A model generated the notes under the pieces. The model ran no database searches and had not been told where the DNA came from. It saw only the letters and a program-made list of their open reading frames with translations. Position numbers and translations under genes: made by a program. A DNA stretch of 64,000 bases from Anthoceros angustus. Taxonomy: Eukaryota > Plantae > Anthocerotophyta. The stretch is taken from positions 75,247 through 139,246 of the forward strand of contig VJWM01000281.1 of assembly GCA_010909165.1 (NCBI GenBank), read 5' to 3'. Below, in pieces: positions 4,411-62,764 of the stretch. Every line of letters begins with the position of its first letter. Within the stretch, counting starts at the first letter, position 1.

Positions 4411-4675
4411 CTAGTCTAGAAAAATAATGAGTTTTGCTTTCTCACGTCTTCTTGGACCGCGTCAACCCAGTAGTAGACATCGATTGGCACGCTTAGGCTA
4501 TGAATATCGGTCTCAAAATATTTTTCACAGGCGTCGAGGCCCTCGCCTCGCTCGCCTTCTTGTTCAAGGTACAATACACTATTTCAAGATCGCAGTGGAC
4601 ATTTGAAAGGTCCTTCGATAGCTTTGGCACGACTTTTGTGATTTTTGGTTTTGCCCAGCTCTTACGCTTGCCCAT
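4411..4675 (-). CDS. ELF1: Elf1/ELOF1-like zinc-ribbon transcription elongation factor, copy 1 (frameshifted as written)
   Basis: ATG at 4675 begins MGKRKSWAKPKITKVVPKL. The 3' part reads CEKYFETDIHSLSVPIDVY..WVDAVQED and stops at TAG 4411-4413. This matches the Elf1 family pattern MGKRK..KL...F.C..C...V.C.L.KK....SC..C...F.T.I..LS.PIDVY..W.DA. Confidence 0.75.
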
Positions 4676-4783
4676 GTTTCTCAATGTCTTGTTCGTGAGT
4701 TAGGCTCTTTATTTTCTTGGGATCTAAAAACGAAAGGAGGCGGTTACTAGGATTCAATACCGTATTTGTTCACACGATGGAAC

Positions 4784-4856
4784 ATATATAGTCTTTCTTT
4801 CGTGAAATTTCTGGTATTTATTCAAAGATATTTACAAGCCAGCTCACAAAACCCTA
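4784..4856 (-). promoter_or_regulatory. Candidate core promoter of the ELF1-like gene (TATA-like CTATATAT and telo-box AAACCCTA), present in each full unit
   Basis: CTATATAT (minus strand, 4784-4791) lies ~110 nt upstream of the ATG. AAACCCTA is at 4849-4856. The ATG context is AAACATGG. Motif matches only. Confidence 0.35.
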
Positions 4857-5010
4857 TTGTGGCTATCATGATGTGCAAGCTTGATCACATGTTGCTCACC
4901 CTAATAAACCCCACGGTCCTAGTTCATATCCGCCACTTGCCAACTACTAGTTGAACTACTAGTTGAACTGCAATTGCCAATGCGAGGAGGTCTTTACTAT
5001 GTAGAAAAGG

Positions 5011-5025
5011 TTTTTTTTTTTTTTT
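5011..5025 (+). repeat. Poly(T) tract, one per unit; about 12-19 nt among the copies counted
   Basis: GAAAAGG(T)nGGTTGG in each unit. Confidence 0.9.
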
Positions 5026-6621
5026 GGTTGGAAGTTTCATGCCAAAGCTGGTTAAAAAGTAACGCTTTGGGTCGGACCGTTCGATGATAGTTCATACATG
5101 CCACATAAGCAATCATGCTTTAGTAGAGAAATTGATCCAAAATAGAATGGGTGTAGTTTCTCTTTGATGTAGACTAGGTTTTCAAAGTTTTGGTGTTTCA
5201 TACTCAAGATGGGGTATTGTTATTCTTCTTCTATTTATCTATCTAGGTACATGATCGGCATCAACAAATCCATCAATTGCAAGAATGTATCCAATGATGG
5301 ACAATAAACACCAACAATATTTTTGCCAACTTCATTGCTAGTTCTAAATAAAGCTCCAAAACCTACATTATTTACATCGTCCTCGAAATTAGCATACAAT
5401 GAGCCTAATTGTGTGTCTTCGTATATGTGGGGCGTAGTTGATCTTGGCATGCAAGTCCTTGCACTACATGTCGGTACTAGGTGCTTCTTTGGCTTCTTGA
5501 TCCCACTCCTCGTGAGACAGTTTTATGAGCCTCCAATGCGCCATGTGATTATTCTATTACTTGGCCAATCACGATGATTACTTTTTGGTCTTTGCCCTTT
5601 TCTATTCTTGGAATTTTTGGTGATTTGTTGAGTAGCCTACCAACTACGGACCGTGATCCAAGGGCGAGCATAGTCTCGATGAGCTAAGCACCTAATCGGT
5701 GCAGACGAGCCGCGAGATGGTGGATCGCAAGGAGGCGGCTTGCGACTAACCATAGTCGTGCTAGCCTAGGTTAACTCACTAGAGCATAGTTAGCAAACCG
5801 TAGTCAAGAACCTCGGGTTACACAAATTGGACATGGACACGGACCAAGCCGCAGGGCTACAAGTCACACGCCAAGATCAAGAAGACTCTCTTCTTCATGC
5901 CCCTCGCCTCGCGGTCGAGGCCCTCGTCATGTGCGCTCATATATGGTATCAAAGCCTATCCATCGATCATTCGATGTTTCTTGAAGATCTCAATGCACCG
6001 GAGTGGATCAAAAGAAGGAGATATGGGAGCTTGCGACCAACGATCGGCATTTGTTAGGGCTTAGGGCGTGAACGGAGCAAGCCTTGTCATAGCATTAGGG
6101 CTTATCCGACTTCTAGAAAGGTAGTTAATATAAGCGGCATCCTACGAGATGGGCACCCAGCACGAGGAGCGCGGGAACGAGAGAGTCTCTTGGATCTTGG
6201 GAACGGATCAAGTAGCCCGCGCCTTGTCCGAGCACGTGTTCAAATATTTGACTCACCTTGTTCTTGACTAGAGTATGCCTAACTCGTTAGTTGATCCTAG
6301 GTTAGTCTCTCAAGCTAAACTAACGTACATCCTATAGCTAGCTAGCTAGCCCTCGTGCTTGCGCTATGTCGGACGCCGCCACGGCCCTCGGCGGATTAGG
6401 TGGCTCGGTGCTATGTCCATCATAGCCTCGCGATCGACTATGTCCTTCACGGTGGAGCTTGCTCAATCCGCCGTGACGATTAACAAAAGCTCATACACTC
6501 TTAAGTGCACAAGCACGAAGCAATTGTAACTATGGTTGATATAAACATAATTTCTAAGAAGGCACAAGTTGGTCTTGAAGATGGTCTGTGTCGTATTCTG
6601 GCACCATTCTTGCGTGCCTTT

Positions 6622-8176
6622 TGAGACATGTTGTATGATTCCCCAATGTGCCAAGAGATTATTCTTTTACTTGTTCAAACATGAAGATCACTTTTTGGTC
6701 TTTGCCCTCTTCCTCTTCTTGGCATTTTCGGCTGATTTGTGGAGCAACCCACTAATGTTTCATTATAACTTATTCAAAAACTTTAATCAAATCCAAAACA
6801 TATACATATGTCCAAACAGTTCTAAATCAAAGGTGGAGGAAAATGCAAATGCTAGCCTAGTCTAGAAAAATAATGAGTTTTGCTTTCTCACCGTCTTCTT
6901 GGACCGTCAACCCATTGTAGTAGACATCGATTGGCACGCTTAGGCTATGAATATCGGTCTCAAAATATTTTTCACAGGCGTCGAGGCCCTCGCCATGTGA
7001 TTATTCTTCTTGTTCAAGGTACAATACACTATTTCAAGATCGCAAAGTGGACATTTGAAAGGTCCTTGAGATAGCTTTGGCACGACTTTTGTGATTTTTG
7101 GTTTTGCCCAGCTCTTACGCTTGCCCATGTTTCTCAATGTCTTGTTCATGAGTTAGGCTCTTTATTTTCTTGGGATCTAAAAACGAAAGGAGACTACTAG
7201 GATTCAATACCGTATTTGTTCACACGATGGAACATATATAGTCTTTCTTTCGGTGAAATTTCTCGGTATTTATTCAAAGATATTTACAAGCCAGCTCACA
7301 AAAACCCTATTGTGGCTATCATGATGTGCAAGCTTGATCACATGTTGCTCACCCTAATAAACCCCACGGTCCTAGTTCATGTAGTTCAAATCCGCCACTT
7401 GGCCAACTACTAGTTGAACTGCAATTCAACGGCCAATTGGAGGAGGTCTTTACTATGTAGAAAAGGTTTTTTTTTTTTTTTGGTTGGAAGTTTCATGCCA
7501 AAGCTGGTTAAAAGTAACGTTTGGGTCGGACCGTTCGATGATAGTTCATACATGCCACATAAGCAATCATGCTTTAGTAGAGAAATTAATCCAAAATAGA
7601 ATGGGTGTAGTTTCTCTTTGATGTAGACTAAGACTAAGCTTGAACTATCATTGAACTACTAGTTTGGCATGGACCTCGTCTAATCAATAGTCTTTGCACT
7701 TTTGAATAGGTTTTCAAAGTTTTGGTGTTTCATACTCAAGATGGGGTATTGTTATTCTTCTTCTATTTATCTATCTAGGTACATGATCGGCATCAACAAA
7801 TCCATCAATTGCAAGAATGTATCCAATCGATGGACAATAAACACCAACAATATTTTTGCCAACTTCATTGCTAGTTCTAAATAAAGCTCCAAAACCTACA
7901 TTATTTACATCGTCCTCGAAATTAGCATACAATGAGCCTAATTGTGTGTCTTCGTATATGTGGGGCGTAGTTGATCTTGGCATGCAAGTCCTTGCACTAC
8001 ATGTCGGTACTAGGTGCTTCTTTGGCTTCTTGATCCCACTCCTCGTGAGACAGTTTTATGAGCCTCCAATGCGCCATGTGATTATTCTATTACTTGGCCA
8101 ATCACGATGATTACTTTTGGTCTTTGCCCTTTTCTATTCTTGGAATTTTTGGTGATTTGTTGAGTAGCCTACCAAC
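6622..8176. repeat. Diverged internal duplication within the unit: 6622-6756 versus 8046-8176
   Basis: TGAGACATGTTGTATGATTCCCCAATGTGCC...GATTTGTGGAGCAACCCACTAA aligns with TGAGACAGTTTTATGAGCCTCCAATGCGCC...GATTTGTTGAGTAGCCTACCAA at roughly 75-80% identity by eye over ~135 bp. Confidence 0.85.
6857..7128 (-). CDS. ELF1: Elf1-like, copy 2 (N-half in frame; second CxxC replaced by unit fragments)
   Basis: ORF-track 6940-7149 contains MGKRKSWAKPKITKVVPKLSQGPFKCPLCDLEIVYCTLNKK. The downstream frame gives EKYFETDIHSLSVPIDVY; stop at 6857. Confidence 0.8.
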
Positions 8177-8594: not shown

Positions 8595-10891
8595 GTTTCT
8601 CAATGTCTTGTTCGTGAGTTAGGCTCTTTATTTTCTTGGATCTAAAAACGAAAGGAGACTACTAGGATTCAATACCGTATTTGTTCACACGATGGAACAT
8701 ATATAGTCTTTCTTTCGGTGAAATTTCTCGGTATTTATTCAAAGATATTTACAAGCCAGCTCACAAAAACCCTATTGTGGCTATCATGATGTGCAAGCTT
8801 GATCACATGTTGCTCACCCTAATAAACCCCACGGTCCTAGTTCATGTAGTTCAAATCCGCCACTTGGCCAACTACTAGTTGAACTACATTATTTACATCG
8901 TCCTCGAAATTAGCATACAATGAGCCTAATTGTGTGTCTTCTTGTTCAAACATGAAGATCACTTTTGGTCTTTGCCCTTTTCTATTCTTGGAATTTTTGG
9001 TTGGAAGTTTCATGCCAAAGCTGGTTAAAAGTAACGTTTGGGTCGGACCGTTCGATGATAGTTCATACATGCCACATAAGCAATCATGCTTTAGTAGAGA
9101 AATTGATCCAAAATAGAATGGGTGTAGTTTCTCTTTGATGTAGACTAAGACTAAGCTTGAACTATCATTGAACTACTAGTTTGGCATGGACTAGGTTTTC
9201 AGAATAGGTTTTCAAAGTTTTGGTGTTTCATACTCAAGATGGGGTATTGTTATTCTTCTTCTATTTATCTATCTAGGTACATGGCATCAACAAATCCATC
9301 AATTGCAAGAATGTATCCAAGCGATGGACAATAAACACCAACAATATTTTTGCCAACTTCATTGCTAGTTCTAAATAAAGCTCCAAAACCTACATTATTT
9401 ACATCGTCCTCGAAATTAGCATACAATGAGCCTAATTGTGTGTCTTCGTATATGTGGGGCGTAGTTGATCTTGGCATGCAAGTCCTTGCACTACATGTCG
9501 GTACTAGGTGCTTCTTTGGCTTCTTGATCCCACCTCGTGAGACAGTTTTATGAGCCTCCAATGCGCCATGTGATTATTCTATTACTTGGCCAATCACGAT
9601 GATTACTTTTGGTCTTTGCCCTTTTCTATTCTTGGAATTTTTGACGATTTGTTGAGTAGCCTACCAACCACGGACCGTGATCCAAGGACGAGCATAGTCT
9701 CGATGAGCTAAGCACCTAATCGGTGCAGACGGCACGAGATGGTGGATCAAAAGAAGGAGATATGGGAGCTTGCGACTAACCATAGTCGTGCTAGCCTAGG
9801 TTAACTCACTAGAGCATAGTTAGCAAACCGTAGTCAAGAACCTCGGGTTACACAAATTGGACATGGACACGGACCAAGCCGCAGGGCTACAAGTCACACG
9901 CGCCAAGATCAAGAAGACTCTCTTCTTCATGCCCCTCGCCTCGCTCGCGGTCGAGGCCCTCGTCATGTGCGCTCATATATGGTATCAAAGCCTATCCATC
10001 GATCTGCGCGTTTCTTGAAGATCTCAATGCACCGGAGTGGATCAAAAGAAGGAGATATGGGAGCTTGCGACCAACGATCGAGCGGTGTTAGGGCTTAGGG
10101 CGAACGGAGCAAGCCTTGTCATAGCATTAGGGCTTATCCACTTCTAGAAAGGTAGTTAATATAAGCGGCATCCTACGAGATGGGCACCCAGCACGAGGAG
10201 CGGCAAGTCGAACGAGAGAGTCTCTTGGATCTTGGGAACGGATCAAGTAGCCCGCGCCTTGTCCGAGCACGTGTTCAAATATTTGACTCACCTTGTTCTT
10301 GACTAGAGTATGCCTAACTCGTTAGTTGATCCTAGGTTAGTCTCTCAAGCTAAACTAACCGTACATCCTATAGCTAGCTAGCTAGCCCTCGTGCTTGCGG
10401 CTATGTCGGACGCCGCCACGGCCCTCGGCGGATTAGGCGGCTCGGTGCTATGTCCATCATAGCCTCGCGATCGACTATGTCCTTCACTGGAGCTTGCTCA
10501 ATCCGCCGTGACGATTAACAAAAGCTCATACACTCTTAAGTGCACAAGCACGAAGCAATTGTAACTATGGTTGATATAAACATAATTTCTAAGAAGGCAC
10601 AAGTTGGTCTTGAAGATGGTGCTGTGTCGTATTCTGGCACCATTCTTGCGTGCCTTTTGAGACATGTTGTATGATTCCCCAATGTGCCAAGAGATTATTC
10701 TTTTACTTGTTCAAACATGAAGATCACTTTTGGTCTTTGCCCTCTTCCTCTTCTTGGCATTTTCGGCTGATTTGTGGAGCAACCCACTAATGTTTCATTA
10801 TAACTTATTCAAAAACTTTAATCAAATCCATATGGACATATACATATGTCCAAACAGTTCAAATCAGCGTGAGGAAAATGCAAATGCTAGC

Positions 10892-11158
10892 CTAGTCTAG
10901 AAAAATAATGAGTTTTGCTTTCTCACGTCTTCTTGGACCGCGTCAACCCATGTAGTAGACATCGATTGGCACGCTTAGGCTATGAATATCGATCTCAAAA
11001 TATTTTTCACGAGGCATCGCGAGGCGACCCTGATCGTCTTCTTGTTCAAGGTACAATACACTATTTCAAGATCGCAAAGTGGACATTTGAAAGGTCCTTG
11101 ATAGCTTTGGCACGACTTTTGTGATTTTTGGTTTTGCCCAGCTCTTACGCTTGCCCAT
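10892..11158 (-). CDS. ELF1: Elf1-like, copy 3 (frameshifted as written)
   Basis: ATG 11158, stop 10892. Retains GAGGCGACCCTG, which reads RVAS on the minus strand just before the second CxxC. Confidence 0.78.
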
Positions 11159-13487: not shown

Positions 13488-13742
13488 CTAGTCTAGAAAA
13501 ATAATGAGTTTTGCTTTCTCACCGTCTTCTTGGACCGCGTCAACCCGTAGTAGACATCGATTGGCACGCTTAGGCTATGAATATCGGTCTCAAATATTTT
13601 TCATGACGAGGCGACCCTGCTCTTCTTGTTCAAGGTACAATACACTATTTCAAGATCGCAAAGTGGACATTTGAAAGGTCCTTGATAGCTTTGGCACGAC
13701 TTTTGTGATTTTTGGTTTTGCCCAGCTCTTACGCTTGCCCAT
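13488..13742 (-). CDS. ELF1: Elf1-like, copy 4 (frameshifted as written)
   Basis: ATG 13742, stop 13488; both halves match the consensus. Confidence 0.75.
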
Positions 13743-16104: not shown

Positions 16105-16364
16105 CTAGTCTAGAAAAATAATGAGTTTTGCTTTCTCACCGTCTTCTTGGACCGCGTCAACCTGTAGTAGACATCGATTGGCACGCTTAGGCTATGAATA
16201 TCGTCTCAAATATTTTTCACAGCGCCAAGATCAAGAAGACTCTCTTCTTGTTCAAGGTACAATACACTATTTCAAGATCGCAGTGGACATTTGAAAGGTC
16301 CTTGAGATAGCTTTGGCACGACTTTTGTGATTTTTGGTTTTGCCCAGCTCTTACGCTTGCCCAT
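16105..16364 (-). CDS. ELF1: Elf1-like, copy 5 (frameshifted as written)
   Basis: ATG 16364, stop 16105; the middle (16221-16243) is replaced by another unit segment. Confidence 0.75.
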
Positions 16365-18669: not shown

Positions 18670-18933
18670 CTAGTCTAGAAAAATAATGAGTTTTGCTTTC
18701 TCACCGTCTTCTTGGACCGCGTCAACCCATGTAGTAGACATCGATTGGCACGCTTAGGCTATGAATATCGGTCTCAAAATATTTTTGCCAACTACTAGTT
18801 TGGCATGGACCTCGTCTTCTTGTTCAAGGTACAATACACTATTTCAAGATCGCAGTGGACATTTGAAAGGTCCTTGATAGCTTTGCACGACTTTTGTGAT
18901 TTTTGGTTTTGCCCAGCTCTTACGCTTGCCCAT
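18670..18933 (-). CDS. ELF1: Elf1-like, copy 6 (frameshifted as written)
   Basis: ATG 18933, stop 18670; the middle (18787-18815) is replaced by other unit segments. Confidence 0.75.
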
Positions 18934-21900: not shown

Positions 21901-22810
21901 AATATAAGCGGCATCCTACGAGATGGTGGAGCTTGCGACTAACCATAGTCGTGCTAGCCTAGTCTAGAAAAATAATGAGTTTTGCTTTCTCACCGTCTTC
22001 TTGGCATGCAAGTCCTTGCACTACATGTCGGTACTAGGTGCTTCTTTGGCTTATCCGACTTCTAGAAAAGGTAGTTAATATAAGCGGCATCCTACGAGAT
22101 GGGCACCCACAGCACGAGGAGCGGCAAGTCGGGAACGAGAGTCTCTTGGATCTTGGGAACGGATCAAGTAGCCCGCGCCTTGTCCGAGCACGTGTTCAAA
22201 TATTTGACTCACCTTGTTCTTGACTAGAGTATGCCTAACTCGTTAGTTGATCCTAGGTTAGTCTCTCAAGCTAAACTAACCGTACATCCTATAGCTAGCT
22301 AGCTAGCCCTCGTGCTTCGCTATGTCGGACGCCGCCACGGCCCTCGCCGGATTAGGCGGCTCGGTGCTATGTCCATCATAGCCTCGCGATCGACTATGTC
22401 CTTCACGGTGGAGCTTGCTCAATCCGCCGTGACGATTAACAAAAGCTCATACACTCTTAAGTGCACAAGCACGAAGCAATTGTAACTATGGTTGATATAA
22501 ACATAATTTCTAAGAAGGCACAAGTTGGTCTTGAAGATGGTGCTGTGTCGTATTCTGGCACCATTCTTGCGTGCCTTTTGAGACATGTTGTATGATTCCC
22601 CAATGTGCCAAGAGATTATTCTTTTACTTGTTCAAACATGAAGATCACTTTTTGGTCTTTGCCCTCTTCCTCTTCTTGGCATTTTTGATTTGTGGAGCAA
22701 CCCACTAATGTTTCATTATAACTTATTTCAAAAACTTTAATCAAATCCATATGGACATATACATATGTCCAAACAGTTCAAATCGGTGCGAGGAAAATGC
22801 AAATGCTAGC

Positions 22811-23077
22811 CTAGTCTAGAAAAATAATGAGTTTTGCTTTCTCACCGTCTTCTTGGACCGCGTCAACCCGGTGTAGTAGACATCGATTGGCACGCTTAGG
22901 CTATGAATATCGGTCTCAAATATTTTTCACAGGCGACGAGGCGACCCTGATTCTTCTTCTTGTTCAAGGTACAATACACTATTTCAAGATCGCAAAGTGG
23001 ACATTTGAAAGGTCCTTGAGATAGCTTTGGCACGACTTTTGTGATTTTGGTTTTGCCCAGCTCTTACGCTTGCCCAT
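22811..23077 (-). CDS. ELF1: Elf1-like, copy 7 (single-base homopolymer frameshifts)
   Basis: ATG 23077, stop 22811; CPLC intact. Frameshifts fall at T4 versus T5 and A3 versus A4 runs and at the GC-rich site. Confidence 0.78.
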
Positions 23078-24836: not shown

Positions 24837-24879
24837 AGCTAGCTAGCTAGCTAGCTAGCTAGCTAGCTAGCTAGCTAGC
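24837..24879. repeat. (GCTA)n expansion, ~10 units
   Basis: Expansion of the (GCTA)3 present in regular units. Confidence 0.9.
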
Positions 24880-32107: not shown

Positions 32108-32202
32108 AACTACTAGTTGAACTACTAGTTGAACTACTAGTTGAACTACTAGTTGAACTACTAGTTGAACTACTAGTTGAACTACTAGTTGAACTACTAG
32201 TT
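32108..32202. repeat. (AACTACTAGTTG)n, ~8 copies
   Basis: Perfect 12-bp period. Confidence 0.95.
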
Positions 32203-42411: not shown

Positions 42412-42455
42412 TAGCTAGCTAGCTAGCTAGCTAGCTAGCTAGCTAGCTAGCTAGC
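42412..42455. repeat. (GCTA)n expansion, ~11 units
   Basis: Directly visible. Confidence 0.9.
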
Positions 42456-44988: not shown

Positions 44989-45248
44989 CTAGTCTAGAAA
45001 AATAATGAGTTTTGCTTTCTCACCGTCTTCTTGGACCGCGTCAACCCGTAGTAGACATCGATTGGCACGCTTAGGCTATGAATATCGCCTCAAATATTTT
45101 TCACAGTATGCCGAGGCGACCCTGATTCTTCTTGTTCAAGGTACAATACACTATTTCAAGATCGCAAAGTGGACATTTGAAAGGTCCTTGATAGCTTTGG
45201 CACGACTTTTGTGATTTTTGGTTTTGCCCAGCTCTTACGCTTGCCCAT
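44989..45248 (-). CDS. ELF1: Elf1-like, copy 9 (frameshifted as written)
   Basis: ATG 45248, stop 44989; same motifs as the consensus. Confidence 0.75.
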
Positions 45249-48200: not shown

Positions 48201-49602
48201 CTAGAAAGGTAGTTAATATAAGCGGCATCCTACGAGATGCACGAGGAGCGCAAGTGGGAACGAGAGAGTCTCTTGGATCTTGGGAGAAGTGTGGACCGCC
48301 ATAAAAGCATCTGGATTCTCAAGGTAATATGTTTTGCTTTCTCACCGTCTTCTTGTTCAAACATGAAGATCACTTTTGGTCTTTGCCCTCTTCCTCTTCT
48401 TGTTCAAACATGAAGATCACTTTTGGTCTTTGCCCTCTTCCTCTTCTTGTTCAAGGTACAATACACTATTTCAAGATCGCAAAGTGGACATTTGAAAGGT
48501 CCTTGAGATAGCTTTGGCACGACTTTTGTGATTTTGAGACATGTTGTATGATTCCCCAATGTGCCAAGAGATTATTCTTTTACTTGTTCAAGGTACAATA
48601 CACTATTTCAAGATCGCAAAGTGGACATTTGAAAGGTCCTTGAGATAGCTTTGGCACGACTTTTGTGATTTTTGGTTTTGCCCAGCTCTTACGCTTGCCC
48701 ATGTTTCTCAATGTCTTGTTCAAACATGAAGATCACTTTTGGTCTTTGCCCTCTTCCTCTTCTTGGCATGCAAGTCCTTGCACTACATGTCGGTACTAGG
48801 TGCTTCTTTGGCTTCTTGATCCCACTCCTCGTGAGACAGTTTTATGAGCCTCCAATGCGCCATGTGATTATTCTTTTACTTGTTCAAACATGAAGATCAC
48901 TTTTGGTCTTTGCCCTTTTCTATTCTTGGAATTTTGGTGATTTGTTGAGTAGCCTACCAACTACGGACCGTGATCCAAGGGCGAGCATAGTCTCGATGAG
49001 CTAAGCACCTAATCGTGAGACAGTTTTATGAGCCTCCAATGCGCCATGTGATTATTCTATTACTTGGCCAATCACGATGATTACTTTTGGTCTTTGCCCT
49101 TTTCTATTCTTGGAATTTTTGGTTTTGCCCAGCTCTTACGCTTGCCCATGTTTCTCAATGTCTTGTTCAAACATGAAGATCACTTTTGGTCTTTGCCCTC
49201 TTCCTCTTCTTGGCATGCAAGTCCTTGCACTACATGTCGGTACTAGGTGCTTCTTTGGCTTCTTGATCCCACTCCTCGTGAGACAGTTTTATGAGCCTCC
49301 AATGCGCCATGTGATTATTCTTTTACTTGTTCAAACATGAAGATCACTTTTGGTCTTTGCCCTCTTCCTCTTCTTGTTCAAGGTACAATACACTATTTCA
49401 AGATCGCAAAGTGGACATTTGAAAGGTCCTTGAGATAGCTTTGGCACGACTTTTGTGATTTTGAGACATGTTGTATGATTCCCCAATGTGCCAAGAGATT
49501 ATTCTTTTACTTGTTCAAAAACTTTAATCAAATCCATATGGACATATACATATGTCCAAGCAGTTCTAAATCAGGCGTGGCGAGGAAAATGCAAATGCTA
49601 GC

Positions 49603-49860
49603 CTAGTCTAGAAAAATAATGAGTTTTGCTTTCTCACCGTCTTCTTGGACCGCGTCAACCCAAAAGACATCGATTGCACGCTTAGGCTATGAATATCAAT
49701 CTCAAATATTTTTCCAGTGCCACGAGGCACGACCCTGCTCTTCTTGTTCAAGGTACAATACACTATTTCAAGATCGCAGTGGACATTTGAAAGGTCCTTG
49801 AGATAGCTTTGGCACGACTTTTGTGATTTTTGGTTTTGCCCAGCTCTTACGCTTGCCCAT
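49603..49860 (-). CDS. ELF1: Elf1-like, copy 10 (frameshifted as written)
   Basis: ATG 49860, stop 49603; noisy 3' half. Confidence 0.7.
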
Positions 49861-52452
49861 GTTTCTCAATGTCTTGTTACCGTGAGTTAGGCTCTTTATT
49901 TTCTTGGGATCTAAAAACGAAAGGAGATTACTAGGATTCAATACCGTATTTGTTCACACGATGGAACATATATAGTCTTTCTTTCGGTGAAATTTCTGGT
50001 ATTTATTCAAAGATATTTACAAGCCAGCTCACAAAAACCCTATTGTGGCTATCATGATGTGCAAGCTTGATCACATGTTGCTCACCCTAATAAACCCCCA
50101 CGGTCCTAGTTCATGTAGTTCAAATCCGCCACTTGGCCAACTACTAGTTGAACTACTAGTTGAACTACACCCGAATTGCCAATGCGAGGAGGTCTTTACT
50201 ATGTAGAAAAGGTTTTTTTTTTTTTTTTTTGGTTGGAAGTTTCATGCCAAAGCTGGTTAAAAGTAACGCTTTGGACCTCGATGATAGTTCATACATGCCA
50301 CATAAGCAATCATGCTTTAGTAGAGAAATTGATCCAAAATAGAATGGGTGTAGTTTCTCTTTGATGTAGACTAGGTTTTCAAAGTTTTGGTGTTTCATAC
50401 TCAAGATGGGGTATTGTTATTCTTCTTCTATTTATTCAAAGATATTTACAAGCCAGCTCACCTTGTTCTTGACTAGAGTATGCCTAACTCGTTAGTTGAT
50501 CCTAGGTTAACTCACTAGAGCATAGTTAGCAAACCGTAGTCAAGAACCTCGGGTTACACAAATTGGACATGGACACGGACCAAGCCGCAGGGCTACAAGT
50601 CACACGCCAAGATCAAGAAGACTCTCTTCTTCATGCTTCTTTGGCTTCTTGACTAGAGTATGCCTAACTCGTTAGTTGATCCTAGGTTAGTCTCTCAAGC
50701 TAAACTAACGTACATCCTATAGCTAGCTAGCCCTCGTGCTTGCACTACATGTCGGTACTAGGTGCTTCTTTGGCTTCTTGATCCCACTCCTCGTGAGACA
50801 GTTTTATGAGCCTCCAATGCGCCATGTGATTATTCTATTACTTGGCCAATCACGATGATTACTTTTGGTCTTTGCCCTCTTCCTCTTCATCAATTGCAAG
50901 AATGTATCCAAGCGATGGACAATAAACACCAACAATATTTTTGCCAACTTCATTGCTAGTTCTAAATAAAGCTCCAAAACCTACATTATTTACATCGTCC
51001 TCGAAATTAGCATACAATGAGCCTAATTGTGTGTCTTATATGTAGTTGATCTTGGCATGCAAGTCCTTGCACTACATGTCGGTACTAGGTGCTTCTTTGG
51101 CTTCTTGATCCCACTCCTCGTGAGACAGTTTTATGAGCCTCCAATGCGCCATTTGATTATTCTATTACTTGGCCAATCACGATGATTACTTTTGGTCTTT
51201 GCCCTTTTCTATTCTTGGAATTTTTGGTGATTTGTTGAGTAGCCTACCAACTACGGACCGTGATCCAAGGGGCGAGCATAGTCTCGATGAGCTAAGCACC
51301 TAATCGGTGCAGGCAGCACGAGATGGTGGGCTGCGGCAAGGAGCTGGCTGCGACTAACCATAGTCGTGCTAGCCTAGGTTAACTCACTAGAGCATAGTTA
51401 GCAAACCGTAGTCAAGAACCTCGGGTTACACAAATTGGACATGGACACGGACCAAGCCGCAGGGCTACAAGTCACACGCCAAGATCAAGAAGACTCTCTT
51501 CTTCATGCCCCTCGCCTCGCTCGCTGTCGAGGCCCTCATGCGCTCATATATGGTATCAAAGCCTATCCATCGATCTCATGCGGTGTTTCTTGAAGATCTC
51601 AATGCCTGGAGTGGATCAAAAGAAGGAGATATGGGAGCTGACCGCATCGATGTTAGGGCTTAGGGCAGGAGCAAGCCTTGTCATAGCATTAGGGCTTATC
51701 CGCTTCTAGAAAAGGTAGTTAATATAAGCGGCATCCTACGAGATGGGCACCCACAGCACGAGGAGCGGCAAGGGAACGAGAGAGTCTCTTGGATCTTGGG
51801 AACGGATGGTAGCGCGCCTTGTCCGAGCACGTGTTCAAATATTTGACTCACCTTGTTCTTGACTAGAGTATGCCTAACTCGTTAGTTGATCCTAGGTTAG
51901 TCTCAAGCTAAACTAACGTACATCCTATAGCTAGCTAGCTAGCCCTCGTGCTTGCAGCTATGTCGGACGCCGCCACGGCCCTCGCCGTGGATTAGGCGGC
52001 TTGCTATGTCCATCATAGCCTCGCGATCGACTATGTCCTTCACTGGAGCTTGCTCAATCCGCCGTGATTAACAAAAGCTCATACACTCTTAAGTGCACAA
52101 GCACGAAGCAATTGTAACTATGGTTGATATAAACATAATTTCTAAGAAGGCACAAGTTGGTCTTGAAGATGGTGCTGTGTCGTATTCTGGCACCATTCTT
52201 GCGTGCCTTTTGAGACATGTTGTATGATTCCCCAATGTGCCAAGAGATTATTCTTTTACTTGTTCAAACATGAAGATCGCTTTTGGTCTTTGCCCTCTTC
52301 CTCTTCTTGGCATTTTCGGCTGATTTGTGGAGCAACCCACTAATGTTTCATTATAACTTATTTCAAAAACTTTAATCAAATCCATATGGACATATACATA
52401 TGTCCAAAGTTCTCAAATATTTTTCAAAGGTGAGGAAAATGCAAATGCTAGC

Positions 52453-52712
52453 CTAGTCTAGAAAAATAATGAGTTTTGCTTTCTCACCGTCTTCTTGGAC
52501 CGTCAACCTTGTAGTAGACATCGATTGGCACGCTTAGGCTATGAATATCGCCTCAAATATTTTTCAGCCCACGAGGCTGACCCCTGCTAAATCTTCTTGT
52601 TCAAGGTACAATACACTATTTCAAGATCGCAGTGGACATTTGAAAGGTCCTTGAGATAGCTTTGGCACGACTTTTGTGATTTTGGTTTTGCCCAGCTCTT
52701 ACGCTTGCCCAT
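52453..52712 (-). CDS. ELF1: Elf1-like, copy 11 (frameshifted as written)
   Basis: ATG 52712, stop 52453; same motifs. Confidence 0.72.
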
Positions 52713-54796
52713 GTTTCTCAATGTCTTGTCACCGTGAGTTAGGCTCTTTATTTTCTTGGGATCTAAAAAGCGAAAGGAGATTACTAGGATTCAATACCGT
52801 ATTTGTTCACACGATGGAACATATATAGTCTTTCTTTCGGTGAAATTTCTGGTATTTATTCAAAGATATTTACAAGCCACTCACAAAACCCTATTGTGGC
52901 TATCATGATGTGCAAGCTTGATCACATGTTGCTCACCTAATAAACCCCCACGGTCCTAGTTCATGTAGTTCAAATCCGCCACTTGGCCAACTACTAGTTG
53001 AACTACATTGCCGTGAGGAGGTCTTTACTATGTAGAAAAGGTTTTTTTTTTTTTTTTTGGTTGGAAGTTTCATGCCAAAGCTGGTTAAAAGTAACGTTTG
53101 GGTCGGACCGTTCGATGATAGTTCATACATGCCACATAAGCAATCATGCTTTAGTAGAAATTGATCCAAAATAGAATGGGTGTAGTTTCTCTTTGATGTA
53201 GACTAGGTTTTCAAAGTTTTGGTGTTTCATACTCAAGATGGGGTATTGTTATTCTTCTTCTATTTATTCAAAGATATTTACAAGCCAGCTCACAAAACCC
53301 TATTGTGGCTATCATGATGTGCAAGCTTGATCACATGTTGCTTCTCTTTGATGTAGACTAAGACTAAGCTTGAACTATCATTGAACTACTAGTTTGGCAT
53401 GGACTCTAAGTTTGCACTTTTGAATAGGTTTTCAAAGTTTTGGTGTTTCATACTCAAGATGGGGTATTGTTATTCTTCTTCTATTTATCTATCTAGGTAC
53501 ATATCAACAAATCCATCAATTGCAAGAATGTATCCAACGATGGACAATAAACACCAACAATATTTTTGCCAACTTCATTGCTAGTTCTAAATAAAGCTCC
53601 AAAACCTACATTATTTACATCGTCCTCGAAATTAGCATACAATGAGCCTAATTGTGTGTCTCGACACGTAATAGTTGATCTTGGCATGCAAGTCCTTGCA
53701 CTACATGTCGGTACTAGGTGCTTCTTTGGCTTCTTGATCCCACTCCTCGTGAGACAGGTTTTATGAGCCTCCAATGCGCCATGTGATTATTCTATTACTT
53801 GGCCAATCACGATGATTACTTTTTGGTCTTTTCTATTCTTGGAATTTTGATTTGTTGAGTAGCCTACCAACGGACCGTGATCCAAGGACGAGCATAGTCT
53901 CGATGAGCTAAGCACCTAATCGGTGACGAGCAGCCGACGAGATGGTGGATCGCAGAAGGAGCGCTTGCGACTAACCATAGTCGTGCTAGCCTAGGTTAAC
54001 TCACTAGAGCATAGTTAGCAAACCGTAGTCAAGAACCTCGGGTTACACAAATTGGACATGGACACGGACCAAGCCGCAGGGCTACAAGTCACACGCGCCA
54101 AGATCAAGAAGACTCTCTTCTTCATGCCCCTCGCCTCGCTCGAGGCCCTCGCGCTCATGGTATCAAAGCCTATCCATCGATCGCATCGGCGTTTCTTGAA
54201 GATCTCAATGCACCGGAGTGGATCAAAGAAGGAGATGGGAGCGCACAACGAATCAGTTAGGGCTTAGGTGAACAGCCTTGTCATAGCATTAGGGCTTAGG
54301 CTATGAATATCGCCTCAAATATTTTTGCCAACTTCATTGCTAGTTCTAAATAAAGCTCCAAAACCTATTGTGGCTATCATGATGTGCAAGCTTGATCACA
54401 TGTTGCTCACCTAATAAACCCCCACGGTCCTAGTTCATACATGCCACATAAGCAATCATGCTTTAGTAGAGAAATTGATCCAAAATAGAATGGGTGTAGT
54501 TTCTCTTTGATGTAGACTAGGTTTTCAAAGTTTTGGTGTTTCATACTCAAGATGGGGTATTGTTATTCTTCTTCTATTTATTCAAAGATATTTACAAGCC
54601 AGCTCACAAAACCCTATTGTGGCTATCATGATGTGCAAGCTTGATCACATGTTGCTCACCTAATAAACCCCCACGGTCCTAGTTCATGTAGTTCAAATCC
54701 GCCACTTGGCCAATCACGATGATTACTTTTTGGTCTTTGCCCTCTTCCTCTTCTTGTTCAAACATGAAGATCACTTTTTGGTCTTTGCCCTCTTCC

Positions 54797-55019
54797 TCTT
54801 CTTGGACCGCGTCAACCCTTGTAGTAGACATCGATTGGCACGCTTAGGCTATGAATATCATCTCAAATATTTTTCACAGCGTCGCCGAGGCACGACCCTC
54901 GTCTTCTTGTTCAAGGTACAATACACTATTTCAAGATCGCAGTGGACATTTGAAAGGTCCTTGATAGCTTTGGCACGACTTTTGTGATTTTGGTTTTGCC
55001 AGCTCTTACGCTTGCCCAT
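54797..55019 (-). pseudogene. ELF1: Elf1-like copy lacking its last ~12 codons
   Basis: ATG 55019 to the WVDAVQE codons, then joined to another unit segment. ORF-track 54858-55103 shows remnants (...RRCEKYL). Confidence 0.68.
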
Positions 55020-56086
55020 GTTTCTCAATGTCTTGTTAGTGTGAGTTAGGCTCTTTATTTTCTTGGGATCTAAAAAGCGAAGGAGGCGGTTACTAGGATT
55101 CAATCGTATTTGTTCACACGATGGAACATATATAGTCTTTCTTTCGGTGAAATTTCTGGTATTTATTCAAAGATATTTACAAGCCAGCTCACAAAACCCT
55201 ATTGTGGCTATCATGATGTGCAAGCTTGATCACATGTTGCTCACCTAATAAACCCCCACGGTCCTAGTTCATGTAGTTCAAATCCGCCACTTGGCCAACT
55301 ACTAGTTGAACTACATTGCCAGTGCGAGGAGGTCCTTACTATGTAGAAAAGGTTTTTTTTTTTTTTTTTTTGGTTGGAAGTTTCATGCCAAAGCTGGTTA
55401 AAAAGTAACGTTTGGGTCGGACCGTTCGATGATAGTTCATACATGCCACATAAGCAATCATGCTTTAGTAGAGAAATTGATCCAAAATAGAATGGGTGTA
55501 GTTTCTCTTTGATGTAGACTAGGTTTTCAAAGTTTTGGTGTTTCATACTCAAGATGGGGTATTGTTATTCTTCTTGTTCAAACATGAAGATCACTTTTTG
55601 GTCTTTGCCCTCTTCCTCTTCTTGTTCAAGGTACAATACACTATTTCAAGATCGCAAAGTGGACATTTGAAAGGTCCTTGATAGCTTTGGCACGACTTTT
55701 GTGATTTTTGGTGATTTGTGGAGCAACCCACTAATGTTTCATTATAACTTATTTCAAAAACTTTAATCAAATCCAAAATAGAATGGGTGTAGTTTCTCTT
55801 TGATGTAGACTAGGTTTTCAAAGTTTTGGTGTTTCATACTCAAGATGGGGTATTGTTATTCTTCTTGTTCAAACATGAAGATCACTTTTTGGTTGGAAGT
55901 TTCATGCCAAAGTGGTTAAAAAGTAACGTTTGGGTCGGACCGTTCGATGATAGTTCATACATGCCACATAAGCAATCATGCTTTAGTAGAGAAATTGATC
56001 CAAAATAGAATGGGTGTAGTTTCTCTTTGATGTAGACTAGGTTTTCAAAGTTTTGGTGTTTCATACTCAAGATGGGGTATTGTTAT

Positions 56087-56890
56087 TCTTCTTGTTCAAA
56101 CATGAAGATCACTTTTTGGTCTTTGCCCTCTTCCTCTTCTTGTTCAAACATGAAGATCACTTTTTGGTCTTTGCCCTCTTCCTCTTCTTGTTCAAACATG
56201 AAGATCACTTTTTGGTCTTTGCCCCTTTTCTATTCTTGGAATTTTTGGTTGGAAGTTTCATGCCAAAGTGGTTAAAAAGTAACGTTTGGGTCGGACCGTT
56301 CGATGATAGTTCATACATGCCACATAAGCAATCATGCTTTAGTAGAGAAATTGATCCAAAATAGAATGGGTGTAGTTTCTCTTTGATGTAGACTAGGTTT
56401 TCAAAGTTTTGGTGTTTCATACTCAAGATGGGGTATTGTTATTCTTCTTCTTGTTCAAACATGAAGATCACTTTTTGGTCTTTGCCCTCTTCCTCTTCTT
56501 GGCATGCAAGTCCTTGCACTACATGTCGCTCATATATGGTATCAAAGCCTATCCATCGATCACATGTTGCTCACCCTAATAAACCCCCACGGTCCTAGTT
56601 CATACATGCCACATAAGCAATCATGCTTTAGTAGAGAAATTGATCCAAAATAGAATGGGTGTAGTTTCTCTTTGATGTAGACTAGGTTTTCAAAGTTTTG
56701 GTGTTTCATACTCAAGATGGGGTATTGTTATTCTTCTTCTTCTTGTTCAAACATGAAGATCACTTTTTGGTCTTTGCCCTCTTCCTCTTCTTGTTCAAAC
56801 ATGAAGATCACTTTTTGGTCTTTGCCCTCTTCCTCTTCTTGTTCAAACATGAAGATCACTTTTTGGTCTTTGCCCTCTTCCTCTTCTTGG
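56087..56890. repeat. 48-bp tandem loops (TCTTCTTGTTCAAACATGAAGATCAC...), two blocks of ~3
   Basis: Restarts at 56087, 56135 and 56183; a second block lies at about 56740-56890. Confidence 0.85.
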
Positions 56891-57119
56891 CATGCAAGTC
56901 CTTGCACTACATGTCGGTACTAGGTGCTTCTTTGGCTTTGATGTAGACTAGGTTTTCAAAGTTTTGGTGTTTCATACTCAAGATGGGGTATTGTTATTCT
57001 TCTTGTTCAAGGTACAATACACTATTTCAAGATCGCAAAGTGGACATTTGATTATTCTTTTACTTGTTCAAGGTACAATACACTATTTCAAGATCGCAAA
57101 GTGGACATTTGATTATTCT

Positions 57120-57340
57120 ATTACTTGGCCAATCACGATGATTACTTGGCCAATCACGATGATTACTTGGCCAATCACGATGATTACTTTTTGGTCTTTG
57201 CCCTCTTCCTCTTCTTGTTCAAGGTACAATACACTATTTCAAGATCGCAAAGTGGACATTTGATTATTCTATTACTTGGCCAATCACGATGATTACTTGG
57301 CCAATCACGATGATTACTTGGCCAATCACGATGATTACTT
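57120..57340. repeat. 21-bp tandem loops (ATTACTTGGCCAATCACGATG) x3, twice
   Basis: Blocks at 57120-57188 and 57271-57340. Confidence 0.9.
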
Positions 57341-57889
57341 TTTGGTCTTTGCCCTCTTCCTCTTCTTGTTCAAGGTACAATACACTATTTCAAGATCGCA
57401 AAGTGGACATTTGAAAGGTCCTTGAGATAGCTTTGGCACGACTTTTGTGATTTTGGTGATTTGTTGAGTAGCCTACCAACTACGGACCGTGATCCAAGGG
57501 CGAGCATAGTTAGCAAACCGTAGTCAAGAACCTCGGGTTACACAAATTGGACATGGACACGGACCAAGCCGCAGGGCTACAAGTCACACGCGCCAAGATC
57601 AAGAAGACTCTCTTCTTCTTGGCATTTTGTGTCGTATTCTCGCACCATTCTTGCGTGCCTTTTGAGACATGTTGTATGATTCCCCAATGTGCCAAGAGAT
57701 TATTCTTTTACTTGTTCAAACATGAAGATCACTTTTTGGTCTTTGCCCTCTTCCTCTTCTTGGCATTTTCTGATTTGTGGAGCAACCCACTAATGTTTCA
57801 TTATAACTTATTTCAAAAACTTTAATCAAATCCAAAACATATACATATGTCCAAGCACAAATCGGTGAGAGGAAAATGCAAATGCTAGC

Positions 57890-58142
57890 CTAGTCTAGAA
57901 AAATAATGAGTTTTGCTTTCTCACCGTCTTCTTGGACGCGTCAACCCGGTAGTAGACATCGATTGGCACGCTTAGGCTATGAATATCTCAAAATATTTTT
58001 CACAGGCCGCACGAGGCGACCTGTCTTCTTGTTCAAGGTACAATACACTATTTCAAGATCGCAGTGGACATTTGAAAGGTCCTTGAGATAGCTTTGGCAC
58101 GACTTTTGTGATTTTGGTTTTGCCAGCTCTTCGCTTGCCCAT
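57890..58142 (-). CDS. ELF1: Elf1-like, copy 12 (frameshifted as written)
   Basis: ATG 58142, stop 57890. CACAGGCCGCACGAGGCGACC preserves the ASC..ACE codons on the minus strand. Confidence 0.72.
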
Positions 58143-59404
58143 GTTTCTCAATGTCTTGTCACCGTGAGTTAGGCTCTTTATTTTCTTGGGATCTAAAAAG
58201 CGAAAGGAGATTACTAGGATTCAATACCGTATTTGTTCACGATGGAACATATATAGTCTTTCTTTCGGTGAAATTTCTCGGTATTTATTCAAAGATATTT
58301 ACAAGCCAGCTCACAAAACCCTATTGTGGCTATCATGATGTGCAAGCTTGATCACATGTTGCTCACCCTAATAAACCCCCACGGTCCTAGTTCATGTAGT
58401 TCAAATCCGCCACTTGGCCAACTACTAGTTGAACTACAACGGCCGAGTGTGCAGGAGGTCTTTACTATGTAGAAAAGGTTTTTTTTTTTTTTTTTGGTTG
58501 GAAGTTTCATGCCAAAGTTAAAAAGTAACGTTTGGGTCGGACCGTTCGATGATAGTTCATACATGCCACATAAGCAATCATGCTTTAGTAGAGAAATTAA
58601 TCCAAAATAGAATGGGTGTAGTTTCTCTTTGATGTAGACTAAGCTTGAACTATCATTGAACTACTAGTTTGGCATGGACGTAATTAGGTTCTTTGCACTT
58701 TGAATAGGTTTTCAAAGTTTTGGTGTTTCATACTCAAGATGGGGTATTGTTATTCTTCTTCTATTTATCTATCTAGGTACATGATGGCATCAACAAATCC
58801 ATCAATTGCAAGAATGTATCCAAGCGATGGACAATAAACACCAACAATATTTTTGCCAACTTCATTGCTAGTTCTAAATAAAGCTCCAAAACTACATTAT
58901 TTACATCGCCCTCGAAATTAGCATACAATGAGCCTAATTGTGTGTCTTCGTATATGTGGCGTAGTTGATCTTGGCATTTTCGGTGAAATTTCTCGGTATT
59001 TATTCAAAGATATTTACAAGTTGCTCACCCTAATAAACCCCCACGGTCCTAGTTCATGTAGTTCAAATCCGCCACTTGGCCAATCACGATGATTACTTTT
59101 TGGTCTTTGCCCTCTTCCTCTTCTTGTTCAAACATGAAGATCACTTTTTGGTCTTTGCCCTCTTCCTCTTCTTGGCATGCAAGTCCTTGCACTACATGAT
59201 TTTGGTTGGAAGTTTCATGCCAAAGCTGGTTAAAAGTAACGTTTGGGTCGGACCGTTCGATGATAGTTCATAGTTCAAATCCGCCACTTGGCCAATCACG
59301 ATGATTACTTTTTGGTCTTTGCCCTCTTCCTCTTCTTGGCATGCAAGTCCTTGCACTACATGTCGGTACTAGGTGCTTCTTTGGCTTCTTGATCCCACTC
59401 CTCG

Positions 59405-59660
59405 TCCAACCCGGGCATATCAAGTGTAAGTTGTAAAACTTGTCACAATATTCTTGAATTGCCTTGTTGGAAAATCTTCCAACGCTGCACAGTCCTTGCG
59501 GTGGTTCAACGCGTGAACTGTCAAGGAAGATCTACGAAAGCCAAGAGTAAATAGGGGACTCCATGCCGAGGTCGACTTGTTTACCGCGCCACCATCGAGC
59601 AGCGTATCCCTCCAACGACATAACATGAATCAATTTTCAAGTCATCCTTGTCGGGCGAAG
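59405..59660 (-). mobile_element. Ty3/gypsy gag fragment, second copy
   Basis: Homologous to 20-200. The minus strand reads SLEGYAARWWRGKQVDLGMESPIYSW...FQQGN..IQEYCDKFYNL (with frameshifts). Confidence 0.75.
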
Positions 59661-60312
59661 GTATTTATTCAAAGATATTTACAAGCCAGCTCACAAAACC
59701 CTATTGTGGCTATCATGCTTGATCACATGTTGCTCACCCTAATAAACCCCCCTAGTTCATGTAGTTCAAATCCGCCACTTGGCCAACTACTAGTTGAACT
59801 ACAACGGCCGAGTGTGCAGGAGGTCTTTACTATGTAGAAAAGGTTTTTTTTTTTTTTTTTGGGAAGTTTCATGCCAAAGTTAAAAAGTAACGTTTGGGTC
59901 GGACGTGGATGATAGTTCATACATGCCACATAAGCAATCATGCTTTAGTAGAGAAATTAATCCAAAATAGAATGGGTGTTTGATGTAGACTAAGCTTGAA
60001 CTATCATTGAACTACTAGTTTGGCATGGACGTAATTAGGTTCTTTGCACTTTTGAATAGGTTTTCAAAGTTTTGGTGTTTCATACTCAAGATGGGGTATT
60101 GTTATTCTTCTTCTATTTATCTATCTAGGTACATGATGGCATCAACAAATCCATCAATTGCAAGAATGTATCCAAGCGATGGACAATAAACACCAACAAT
60201 ATTTTTGCCAACTTCATTGCTAGTTCTAAATAAAGCTCCAAAACTACATTATTTACATCGCCCTCGAAATTAGCATACAATGAGCCTAATTGTGTGTCTT
60301 CGTATACGTAGG

Positions 60313-60440
60313 TTTGATCTTGCGTTGGAGTTCTTTGTCAAGTTGAGGCACAGGTTTGAATTGGTACTCCTCACCCTCACACCTCCCCACTTGATTTCCC
60401 TCACTGGTTCTCCGGCTCAGACTCATCACCAGACGTCACC
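60313..60440 (-). mobile_element. Gypsy gag-region island homologous to 263-400
   Basis: TTGATCTTGCGTTGGAGTTCTTTGTCAAGTTGAGGC...TTGAATTGGTACTCCTCACCCTC is shared with 264-331. Confidence 0.75.
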
Positions 60441-61104
60441 ATGGCTTTGATGTAGACTAGGTTTTCAAAGTTTTGGTGTTTCATACTCAAGATGGGGTAT
60501 TGTTATTCTTCTTCTATTTATCTATCTAGGTACATGATCATCAACAAATCCATCAATTGCAAGAATGTATCCAAGCGATGGACAATAAACACCAACAATA
60601 TTTTTGCCAACTTCATTGCTAGTTCTAAATAAAGCTCCAAAACCTACATTATTTACATCGTCCTCAAATTAGCATACAATGAGCCTAATTGTGTCTCTTC
60701 GTATATGTGGGCGCGTAGTTTGATCTTGGCATGCAAGTCCTTGCACTACATGTCGGTACTAGGTGCTTCTTTGGCTTCCTGATCCCACTCCTCGTAGGAC
60801 AGGTTTTATGAGCCTCCAATGCGCCATGTGATTATTCTATTACTTGGCCAATCACGATGATTACTTTTTGGTCTTTGCCCCTTTTCTATTCTTGGAATTT
60901 TTGAGTGATTTGTTGAGTAGCCCACCAACTACGGACCGTGATCCAAGGGCGAGCATAGTCTCGATGAGCTAAGCACCTAATCTGCAGACGCAACCGCCGA
61001 GATGGTGGACGCAGCAAGGAGGCGGCTTGCGACTAACCATAGTCGTGCTAGCCTAGGTTAACTCACTAGAGCATAGTTAGCAAACCGTAGTCAAGAACCT
61101 CGGG

Positions 61105-61228
61105 TCTGTGGTTGCGTGACATTCTGTGCTGATTCCACCCGCTTCCGAGGTCGCCCCGCCCGCAATCACTTCGAGCAATATTCTATCAACGCAGCTTCCT
61201 TGCCATTAATCTCCACGAGTGAGCCTCC
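61105..61228 (-). mobile_element. Island homologous to 757-885 of the left gypsy region
   Basis: TCTGTGG..TTGCGTGACAT..TGATTCCACCC..TTCCGAGGTCGC..CGCAATC..TATCAACGCAGC..GAGTGAGCCTCC is shared and collinear. Confidence 0.7.
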
Positions 61229-62515
61229 AATGCGCCATTTGATTATTCTATTACTTGGCCAATCACGATGATTACTTTTTGGTCTTTGCCCTTTTCTATT
61301 CTTGGAATTTTTGATCGATTTGTTGAGTAGCCTACCAACTACGGACCGTGATCAGTGATCAGCATAGTCTCGATGAGCTAAGCACCTAATCGCAGTACGA
61401 GGAGAGATGGTGGAGTGCAGCGAGGCTTGCGACAACCATAGGGTATAGCCTAGGTTAACTCACTAGAGCATAGTTAGCAAACCGTAGTCAAGAACCTCGG
61501 GTTACACAAATTGGACATGGACACGGACCAAGCCGCGGGGCTACAAGTCACAGCGCCAAGATCAAGAAGACTCTCTTCTTCATGCCCCTCGCCTCGCGGC
61601 CGAGGCCCTCGTCATGTGCGCTCATATGGTATCAAAGCCTATCCATCGATGGCAGGCTGTTTCTTGAAGATCTCAATGCAGGAGTGGATCAAAGAAGGAG
61701 AGATGGGAGCGCAACGGCAAGCATGTTGAGGGGCTTAGGTGGCGGGAGCAAGCCTTGTCATAGCATTAGGGCTTATCCAAAACTAGAAAAGGTAGTTAAT
61801 ATAAGCGGCAGCCTACGAGATGGGCACCCACAGGAGGATGCAAGCGAACGAGAGAGTCTCTTGGATCTTGGGAACGGATCAAGTAGCCCGCGCCTTGTCC
61901 GAGCACGTGTTCAAATATTTGACTCACCTTGTTCTTGACTAGAGTATGCCTAACTCGGTTAGTTGATCCTAGGTTAGTCTCTCAAGCTAAACTAAGTACA
62001 TCCTATAGCTAGCTAGCTAGCCCTGCTTATACCTATGCTGACGCCGCCACGGCCCTGCTGGCGAGATTAGCGGCTCGCTATGTCCATCATAGCCTCGCGA
62101 TCGACTATGTCCTTCACGAGCTAGCTTGCTCAATCCGCCGTGACATCAAAAGCTCATACACTTAAGTGCACAAGAAGCAATTGTAACTATGGTTGATATA
62201 AACATAATTTCTAAGAAGGCACAAGTTGGTCTTGAAGATGGTCTTGTGTCGTATTCTGGCACCATTCTTGCGTGCCTTTTGAGACATGTATGATTCCCCA
62301 ATGTGCCAAGAGATTATTCTTTTACTTGTTCAAACATGAAGATCACTTTTTGGTCTTTGCCCTCTTCCTCTTCTTGGCATTTTCGGCTGATTTGTGGAGC
62401 AACCCACTAATGTTTCATTATAACTTATTTCAAAAACTTTAATCAAATCCATATGGACATATACATATGTCCAAAATAGTTCAAATCAGTGAGCGAGGAA
62501 AATGCAAATGCTAGC

Positions 62516-62764
62516 CTAGTCTAGAAAAATAATGAGTTTTGCTTTCTCACCGTCTTCTTGGACCGCGTCACAACCAGTAGACATCGATTGTAGGCTATGA
62601 ATATCGGTCTCAAATATTTTTCACGGGCGTGCGCGAGGCCGACCCTGCTCTTCTTGTTCAAGGTACAATACACTATTTCAAGATCGCAGTGGACATTTGA
62701 AAGGTCCTTGATAGCTTTGGCACTTTTGTGATTTTGGTTTTGCCTTGACTCTTCGCTTGCCCAT
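62516..62764 (-). CDS. ELF1: Elf1-like, copy 13 (noisy, frameshifted)
   Basis: ATG 62764, stop 62516; several small deletions. Confidence 0.68.

Follow-up and report, generated by a model that had tools for sequence, protein, structure and literature searches.

What has been multiplied in a long tandem array of Anthoceros angustus (Anthocerotophyta), and can it still be regarded as a gene? The question is raised by a stretch of 64,000 nucleotides (assembly GCA_010909165.1, contig VJWM01000281.1, positions 75,247 to 139,246 of the forward strand), referred to as the window in the following. A first-pass annotation, made from the sequence without database searches, had proposed that the window contains a head-to-tail array of a 2.6-kb unit with a minus-strand gene for a divergent ELF1/ELOF1 protein. 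RNA polymerase II uses ELF1/ELOF1 as a small core factor in elongation and transcription-coupled repair, and the protein is usually encoded by one or few gene copies. We interpret the locus, with moderate confidence, as an array that is real and consists of amplified copies of a very divergent ELF1 paralogue, viewed through a noisy assembly.

Each full unit carries one intronless ELF1/ELOF1-type gene on the minus strand, starting with ATGGGCAAGCG. The family assignment was evaluated with the Pfam profile PF05129 (Zn_ribbon_Elf1), a search that the first-pass annotation had suggested as a check. Both halves of the gene matched the profile and were colinear, the N-terminal half covering profile positions 1-41 with 21.7-23.2 bits and the C-terminal half positions 51-79 with 19.3-23.4 bits. 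Single stop-to-stop pieces scored 19-23 bits, below the PF05129 gathering score of 29.8 bits, which no single product reaches because every assembled copy is frame-broken. A composite was constructed from the two gene halves with X at the unsettled places, and an ELF1 profile was built from 87 ELF1 proteins; the X-bridged composite matched this profile with 59.1 bits (E 2e-20) and was colinear across the whole domain. In a sequence search of the PDB, all 12 matches of the C-terminal half were Elf1/ELOF1 chains, and residues 1-41 of the N-terminal half aligned colinearly to the same chains. Judged by these profile and chain matches, the array gene is a member of the ELF1/ELOF1 family, as had been proposed.

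Most of the zinc-ribbon motifs that had been listed for the protein were recovered. The basic N-terminal tail MGKRKSWAKPK is present in 27 copies, the C-terminal helix SLSVPIDVYY.WVDAV aligns with yeast SLSQPVDVYSDWFDAV in the PDB chains, and the first CxxC (CPLC) and the last zinc cysteine (C-EKYF) are located in invariant sequence; the third zinc cysteine, in contrast, was seen in some copies only. The versions of the GC-rich patch in which it lies, between the two gene halves, are compatible with nine codons including a second CxxC, without proving it. In comparison with the Elf1/ELOF1 family (solved chains include 5xog_M, 6ir9_M, 8b3d_M and 8tvy_O), the array protein shares the colinear domain, the MGKRKS start, the first CxxC, the V.C.L strand, the last zinc cysteine followed by ..F.T.I..LS.PIDVY..W.DA, and a predicted length of about 90 residues, which is the length of the family. 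It differs at near-invariant positions, with CPLCDL for CPFCNH, LSVP for LSEP and DAV for DAC, it is devoid of an acidic tail, and its gene occurs in tens of tandem copies rather than in one or few.

The extent of the array was determined by blastn of one unit (8595-11158) against the window. The 2.56-kb head-to-tail repeat occupies positions 1378-64000, with the genes in minus orientation; its left boundary at 1378 lies within a unit, and on the right it continues past the end of the window. Regular stretches were found at 3312-24880, 40177-46576, 49861-53200 and 57628-64000, where units of 2453-2852 bp are 93-96% identical as assembled. An alignment of seven units contained 2104 invariant columns out of 3399 and 29 invariant blocks of at least 25 columns, variation being concentrated in short patches. 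A multi-copy head-to-tail array of a 2.56-kb repeat is thus real in the sequence. The unit described by the first-pass annotation is borne out by this self-comparison and alignment, and the limits given there are exact, 4411 being where the first full copy has its stop and 62764 where the last one has its ATG. That span, however, is part of an array reaching from 1378 to the window end at 64000, and about 40% of the window consists of shuffled unit fragments instead of regular units. The term satellite-like fits the layout but not the estimated copy number, which is in the tens and not in the thousands.

The gene start was detected as 27 exact 23-mers in the window, and 30 times with a looser 11-nt pattern. 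Twelve copies span the region from the ATG to a common stop and measure 249-272 nt, all on the minus strand. Those with a broken frame and no further peculiarity are located at 4411-4675 (265 nt), 10892-11158 (267 nt), 13488-13742 (255 nt), 22811-23077 (267 nt), 44989-45248 (260 nt), 49603-49860 (258 nt), 52453-52712 (260 nt) and 57890-58142 (253 nt). In the longest copy (6857-7128, 272 nt) a detour takes the place of the GC-rich patch, in two others the patch is an exact copy of another part of the unit (28 nt in the copy at 16105-16364, 260 nt; 21 nt in that at 18670-18933, 264 nt), and the copy at 62516-62764 (249 nt) is the most damaged. A thirteenth, at 54797-55019 on the same strand, begins with the ATG at 55019 and leaves the gene before the stop, jumping into another part of the unit and losing the last ~11 codons. 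At least 14 further N-terminal gene fragments were found in the shuffled zones. Of the 13 start-to-stop copies counted in the first-pass annotation, 12 therefore stand with ATG and common stop, although none is intact as assembled; the protein given there was a mosaic pieced together across copies, as was said at the time, and no single copy is open. The inferred full length is 273 nt (41 + 9 + 40 codons plus stop), which no copy exceeds, and if the longer allele is taken at each indel site both gene halves remain in frame and free of stops. A possible intron of 30 nt (GTGAG...CTAG) behind the QED codons was considered and rejected, as it is below the size of plant introns. Despite the lack of introns, a simple processed retrocopy is not supported, as no A-run follows the stop in the unit and a TATA-like element lies upstream of the gene.

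The broken frames can be explained in two ways. They may be real, in which case an ELF1-derived sequence, for instance an old retrocopy, would have been carried along in an amplified 2.56-kb repeat, and the gene copies would be non-coding relics in silent heterochromatin. We consider this explanation possible but rather unlikely, and among the alternatives it survives best. Otherwise, the frameshifts have been introduced during sequencing and assembly. The pattern of differences between the units argues for this second explanation. Out of 22 isolated variable columns in the seven-unit alignment, 19 were single-base indels, mostly in short runs, and three were substitutions; as this ratio is the reverse of natural divergence, it points to a technical origin. 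Noisy windows were richer in G+C (0.51 vs 0.40) and CpG (rho -0.39, p 3e-4). In a 60-bp section of the gene there are three indel sites (A5/A4, TCTC/TC and TTT/T), which were found in seven of the eight possible combinations among 27 copies, and such nearly free combination makes inheritance of mutations unlikely and fits a consensus artefact. In the GC-rich patch between the gene halves, four of 13 copies hold 16-28-nt exact copies of other unit parts, the patch with these detours measuring 26-33 nt and thus about as much as in the other copies (20-30 nt). A biological cause for four independent, length-matched replacements in one and the same patch, each from a different donor, is difficult to envisage, whereas wrong paths taken in a consensus or graph step would readily account for them.

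For comparison, contigs derived from the reads of run X1 were placed on a stretch of 6 kb (22700-28699). At 23215, 23312, 23424 and 28062 two forms are present at high depth in these contigs, the assembled one and another that is longer by one or two letters. A contig of 219 nt with a depth of 163 spans a patch that differs among all eight assembled copies compared, and carries 13 letters more than the assembly. A deep, uniform contig with additional letters indicates that the true copies are uniform at this place and that the assembly is biased towards deletions. Thus, the frameshifts and the hypervariable GC-rich patches are probably for the most part technical, originating from an error-prone, deletion-biased long-read assembly, and in reality the copies are probably almost identical. 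Due to this noise, which the first-pass annotation had not weighed, the coding integrity of the copies cannot be called. A practical lesson is that repeat arrays in this assembly show deletion-type noise and length-matched detours which mimic pseudogenes and recombination, and claims of frameshifts, decayed copies or microhomology shuffling for this genome consequently need accurate reads first.

The composite is 42-46% identical to ELF1 proteins of streptophytes (a fern, gymnosperms, legumes and Chara), which are 64-86% identical to each other, and in a maximum-likelihood tree the array gene has the longest terminal branch (2.2 compared to a median of 0.13). Nevertheless, retention is uneven: the array protein keeps the family residue in 18 of the 27 columns with a conservation of at least 90%, in 11 of the 20 intermediate ones and in three of the 22 variable ones. 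Core residues of the family are therefore preserved at ~55% divergence, and the long-allele reading is free of stops; together, this suggests that a long period of constraint at the protein level preceded the amplification. In the tree, the array gene joined Pedinophyceae, a kinship that was rejected since this is the other long branch and the grouping is read as long-branch attraction. An exhaustive phmmer search with the 41-residue N-terminal half against 1.84 billion representatives returned a single ELF1 protein, from a Pedinophyceae alga (P0007, 51% identity), the remaining matches being spurious C2H2 zinc-finger arrays. A word-indexed protein search with the same half gave no candidate with three common 5-residue words, a feature search of the ESM Atlas did not go beyond clusters of generic small zinc ribbons, with values of 0.76-0.79 that are below any useful level, and an invariant 26-mer from the gene had 0 matches in a metagenome scan. 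The 8-residue pattern PFKCPLCD led to a soil metagenome contig (L001, 1144-1173) with 10 residues 100% identical, which was dismissed as a zinc-finger coincidence and not a relative.

Several observations weigh against a functional paralogue, many of them in favour of silent relics. No assembled copy is an uninterrupted open reading frame (ORF), the longest run from an ATG comprising 75 codons and most about 30, and the gene has no introns. The third zinc cysteine falls within the GC-rich patch of 20-33 nt that differs in every copy, and its TGC codon is visible in some copies only, e.g., in the one starting at 58142. Between copies, the coding part shows no higher conservation than the remaining unit; with this equal homogeneity of coding and non-coding DNA, selection can neither be recognized nor tested from the array itself. 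No close relative of the predicted protein was found with the N-terminal half among the 1.84 billion representatives searched by phmmer. A search for RNA runs containing the gene listed none, and from one RNA-type run of the same sample nothing was placed on the 6-kb stretch 22700-28699. Some indel alleles occur at comparable depth in the run X1 contigs (123/250 at 23215), and sites with both alleles may represent real copy variants or a systematic read error common to run X1 and the assembly. The read type of run X1 and whether it derives from the same sample are not on record, and no contig of it was found on the gene copy at 22811-23077, a gap that is uninformative by itself. On the other side stand the indel-to-substitution ratio, the free combination of neighbouring indels, the length-matched detours, the uniformity of the deep contig where assembled copies differ, the stop-free long-allele reading with its retained core residues, and the missing poly(A) tract after the gene. 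On balance, these findings lead us to prefer an amplified ELF1 paralogue whose copies are obscured by assembly noise.

A more radical explanation is that the array was made by the assembler, which would have falsely expanded one or two genomic copies. This appears very improbable, despite the fact that about 40% of the window walks through fragments of its own unit. Read depth, which the first-pass annotation had suggested as a measure of copy number, argues against it: in run X1 the word depths of contigs from unit blocks are 160-500, summing up to ~1000 per bin, in contrast to 6-17 for contigs of minor variants. If the depth of the minor variants approximates a single copy, a baseline that is itself inferred, the unit blocks are present tens of times, in agreement with the assembly. 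In addition, the regular units carry different noise, indicating that they were not copied from one another. The array is therefore multi-copy, with an estimated number of units in the tens, and on that baseline the reads support a high copy number.

The shuffled part of the window consists of unit fragments in new orders and is distributed over four zones (1579-3311, 24881-40150, 46577-49602 and 53200-57630). The largest, 24881-40150, was characterized by exact-match tiling and by counting rearrangement jumps: 265 tiles with a median of 41 nt, each an exact match of at least 20 nt to the regular array, cover 96% of it, and jumps number 39-64 per 4 kb compared to 4-11 in the regular array. The zone at 46577-49602 contains N-terminal gene fragments with ATGs at 47601, 48702 and 49149. 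Recurrent jumps occur either at a ~120-bp sub-repeat or at the motif TTGAACAAGAAG, which is common to the gene and the sub-repeat; one recurrent junction connects unit position ~2539 with ~399. The sub-repeat is found three times per unit with ~80-90% identity, at positions 347-407, 944-1062 and 2064-2185 of unit 8595-11158 (plus strand). Small sub-arrays with 98-100% identity were also observed, among them 130-bp repeats composed of the initial 120 nt of the gene. One of these, at 1698-2631 within the minus-strand zone 1579-3311, and another at 39476-40148 repeat the first ~120 nt of the gene (ATG through CTLNK) head-to-tail with a period of 110-130 bp, resulting in runs of N-terminal fragments. 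The 12-mer AACTACTAGTTG forms perfect arrays (100% identical) at 33246-33379 (11 copies) and 35367-35533 (14 copies). As this 12-mer is obtainable by joining two unit segments with ~11 common nt, a loop in a small-word graph is as plausible as a minisatellite. In view of the length-matched detours we lean towards an assembly artefact for much of the shuffled zones, in which some real structure may be contained.

Capture of a host ELF1 fragment as cargo of a Pack-MULE- or Helitron-like element, the window being a nest of such elements, would account for an intronless and divergent gene, but is hardly credible. The copies are arranged strictly head-to-tail with a constant period and without spacers; apart from that of the ELF1-like gene, no Pfam domain was recovered from unit or flank, whether of a transposase, a reverse transcriptase or any other protein; and no terminal inverted repeats bound the units in the sequence inspected.

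Further support for a former or present gene might come from a TATA-like element, CTATATATG, located on the minus strand at 4775-4795 upstream of the first full copy, ~100-120 nt from its ATG. In its 21-nt context the element occurs at 16 identical sites, with 0 expected by chance. Fifteen of the 16 are found ~100 nt upstream of a gene start, namely those of the 13 copies listed above and of truncated copies at 8594 and 20444, whereas the sixteenth (1408) lies at the left array boundary with no gene start below. Its role as a promoter is putative.

Outside the ELF1-like gene little could be annotated. Another recurrent ORF, with a length of up to 98 codons, lies on the same strand as the gene at 9265-9561 (minus), within invariant blocks, and was also seen in other units, e.g., at 5235-5450 and 7771-7983. 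The flank outside the array (1-1377, 51% G+C) contains several overlapping ORFs of up to 173 codons on both strands, adjoining the array. Pfam gave no match for the ORFs of the flank or for recurrent unit ORFs other than the ELF1-like gene, and an Rfam and tRNA scan of the window gave no match.

Returning to the amplified paralogue, the following scenario would be consistent with the data. The unit carries an intronless gene of ~90 codons for a divergent zinc-ribbon protein of the ELF1/ELOF1 type, with the TATA-like element ~110 nt upstream. A long evolution of this gene as a protein-coding paralogue of ELF1 would have been followed by its amplification together with the surrounding DNA, in parallel to gene families co-amplified with repeats on the Marchantia V chromosome. 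If the protein is made, it would occupy the ELF1 site on RNA polymerase II, either as a variant of the canonical factor or in competition with it. A further step, which we put forward only tentatively and regard as doubtful, is that intact copies are expressed at a restricted stage such as male gametogenesis, making the array an ampliconic, possibly sex-linked and fast-evolving ELF1 paralogue that was amplified for dosage or in a genetic conflict. The dosage, tissue-specific, sex- or B-chromosome and selfish-locus roles put forward in the first-pass annotation are likewise conjectural. A lineage-specific, highly divergent ELF1 paralogue in tens of tandem copies would be unusual, and with intact and expressed copies it would represent a natural experiment on a variant elongation and repair factor.

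The first-pass annotation knew of no described ELF1/ELOF1 array, and in agreement with this, full-text literature searches found no published description of one. Comparison is therefore possible with other amplified gene families. Ampliconic families of animal sex chromosomes, e.g., the human and great-ape Y, are testis-expressed and sex-linked. With these the array shares near-identical multicopy genes in tandem or repeated blocks that collapse or become garbled in ordinary assemblies. Its unit of 2.56 kb is much smaller.

The closest precedent by analogy for co-amplification of a gene with a repeat is the V chromosome of Marchantia polymorpha, where, according to a summary of earlier work (Okada 2001, Yamato 2007) in a preprint (bioRxiv 10.1101/2021.02.08.430207), the YR1 repeat with the embedded ORF162 family is present in a few hundred copies over 2-3 Mb. 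V-specific repeats are placed at one end of this chromosome in a further report (PMC9516144). As far as these summaries go, both cases comprise a protein-coding gene family co-amplified with a lineage-specific repeat; in the present array the repeat forms many near-identical, head-to-tail, gene-bearing units, 13 plus fragments in 62.6 kb. The short repeat elements in various arrangements described for YR1 resemble the shuffled zones of our assembly, for which, however, the length-matched detours suggest an artefact. In contrast to ORF162, which is given no function in the summary concerned, the cargo here is a zinc ribbon of the ELF1 type, and it occurs in tens of copies instead of the few hundred over 2-3 Mb summarized for Marchantia. 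Sex linkage and expression in male organs, which mark the YR1 type, would be conjectural for the Anthoceros array. If its copies proved intact and expressed, the array would be the second bryophyte case, beside ORF162 of the Marchantia V chromosome, of coding genes co-amplified with private repeats, independent of the Marchantia one, and if it is indeed an ampliconic paralogue, ELF1 would thereby gain its first family of this kind.

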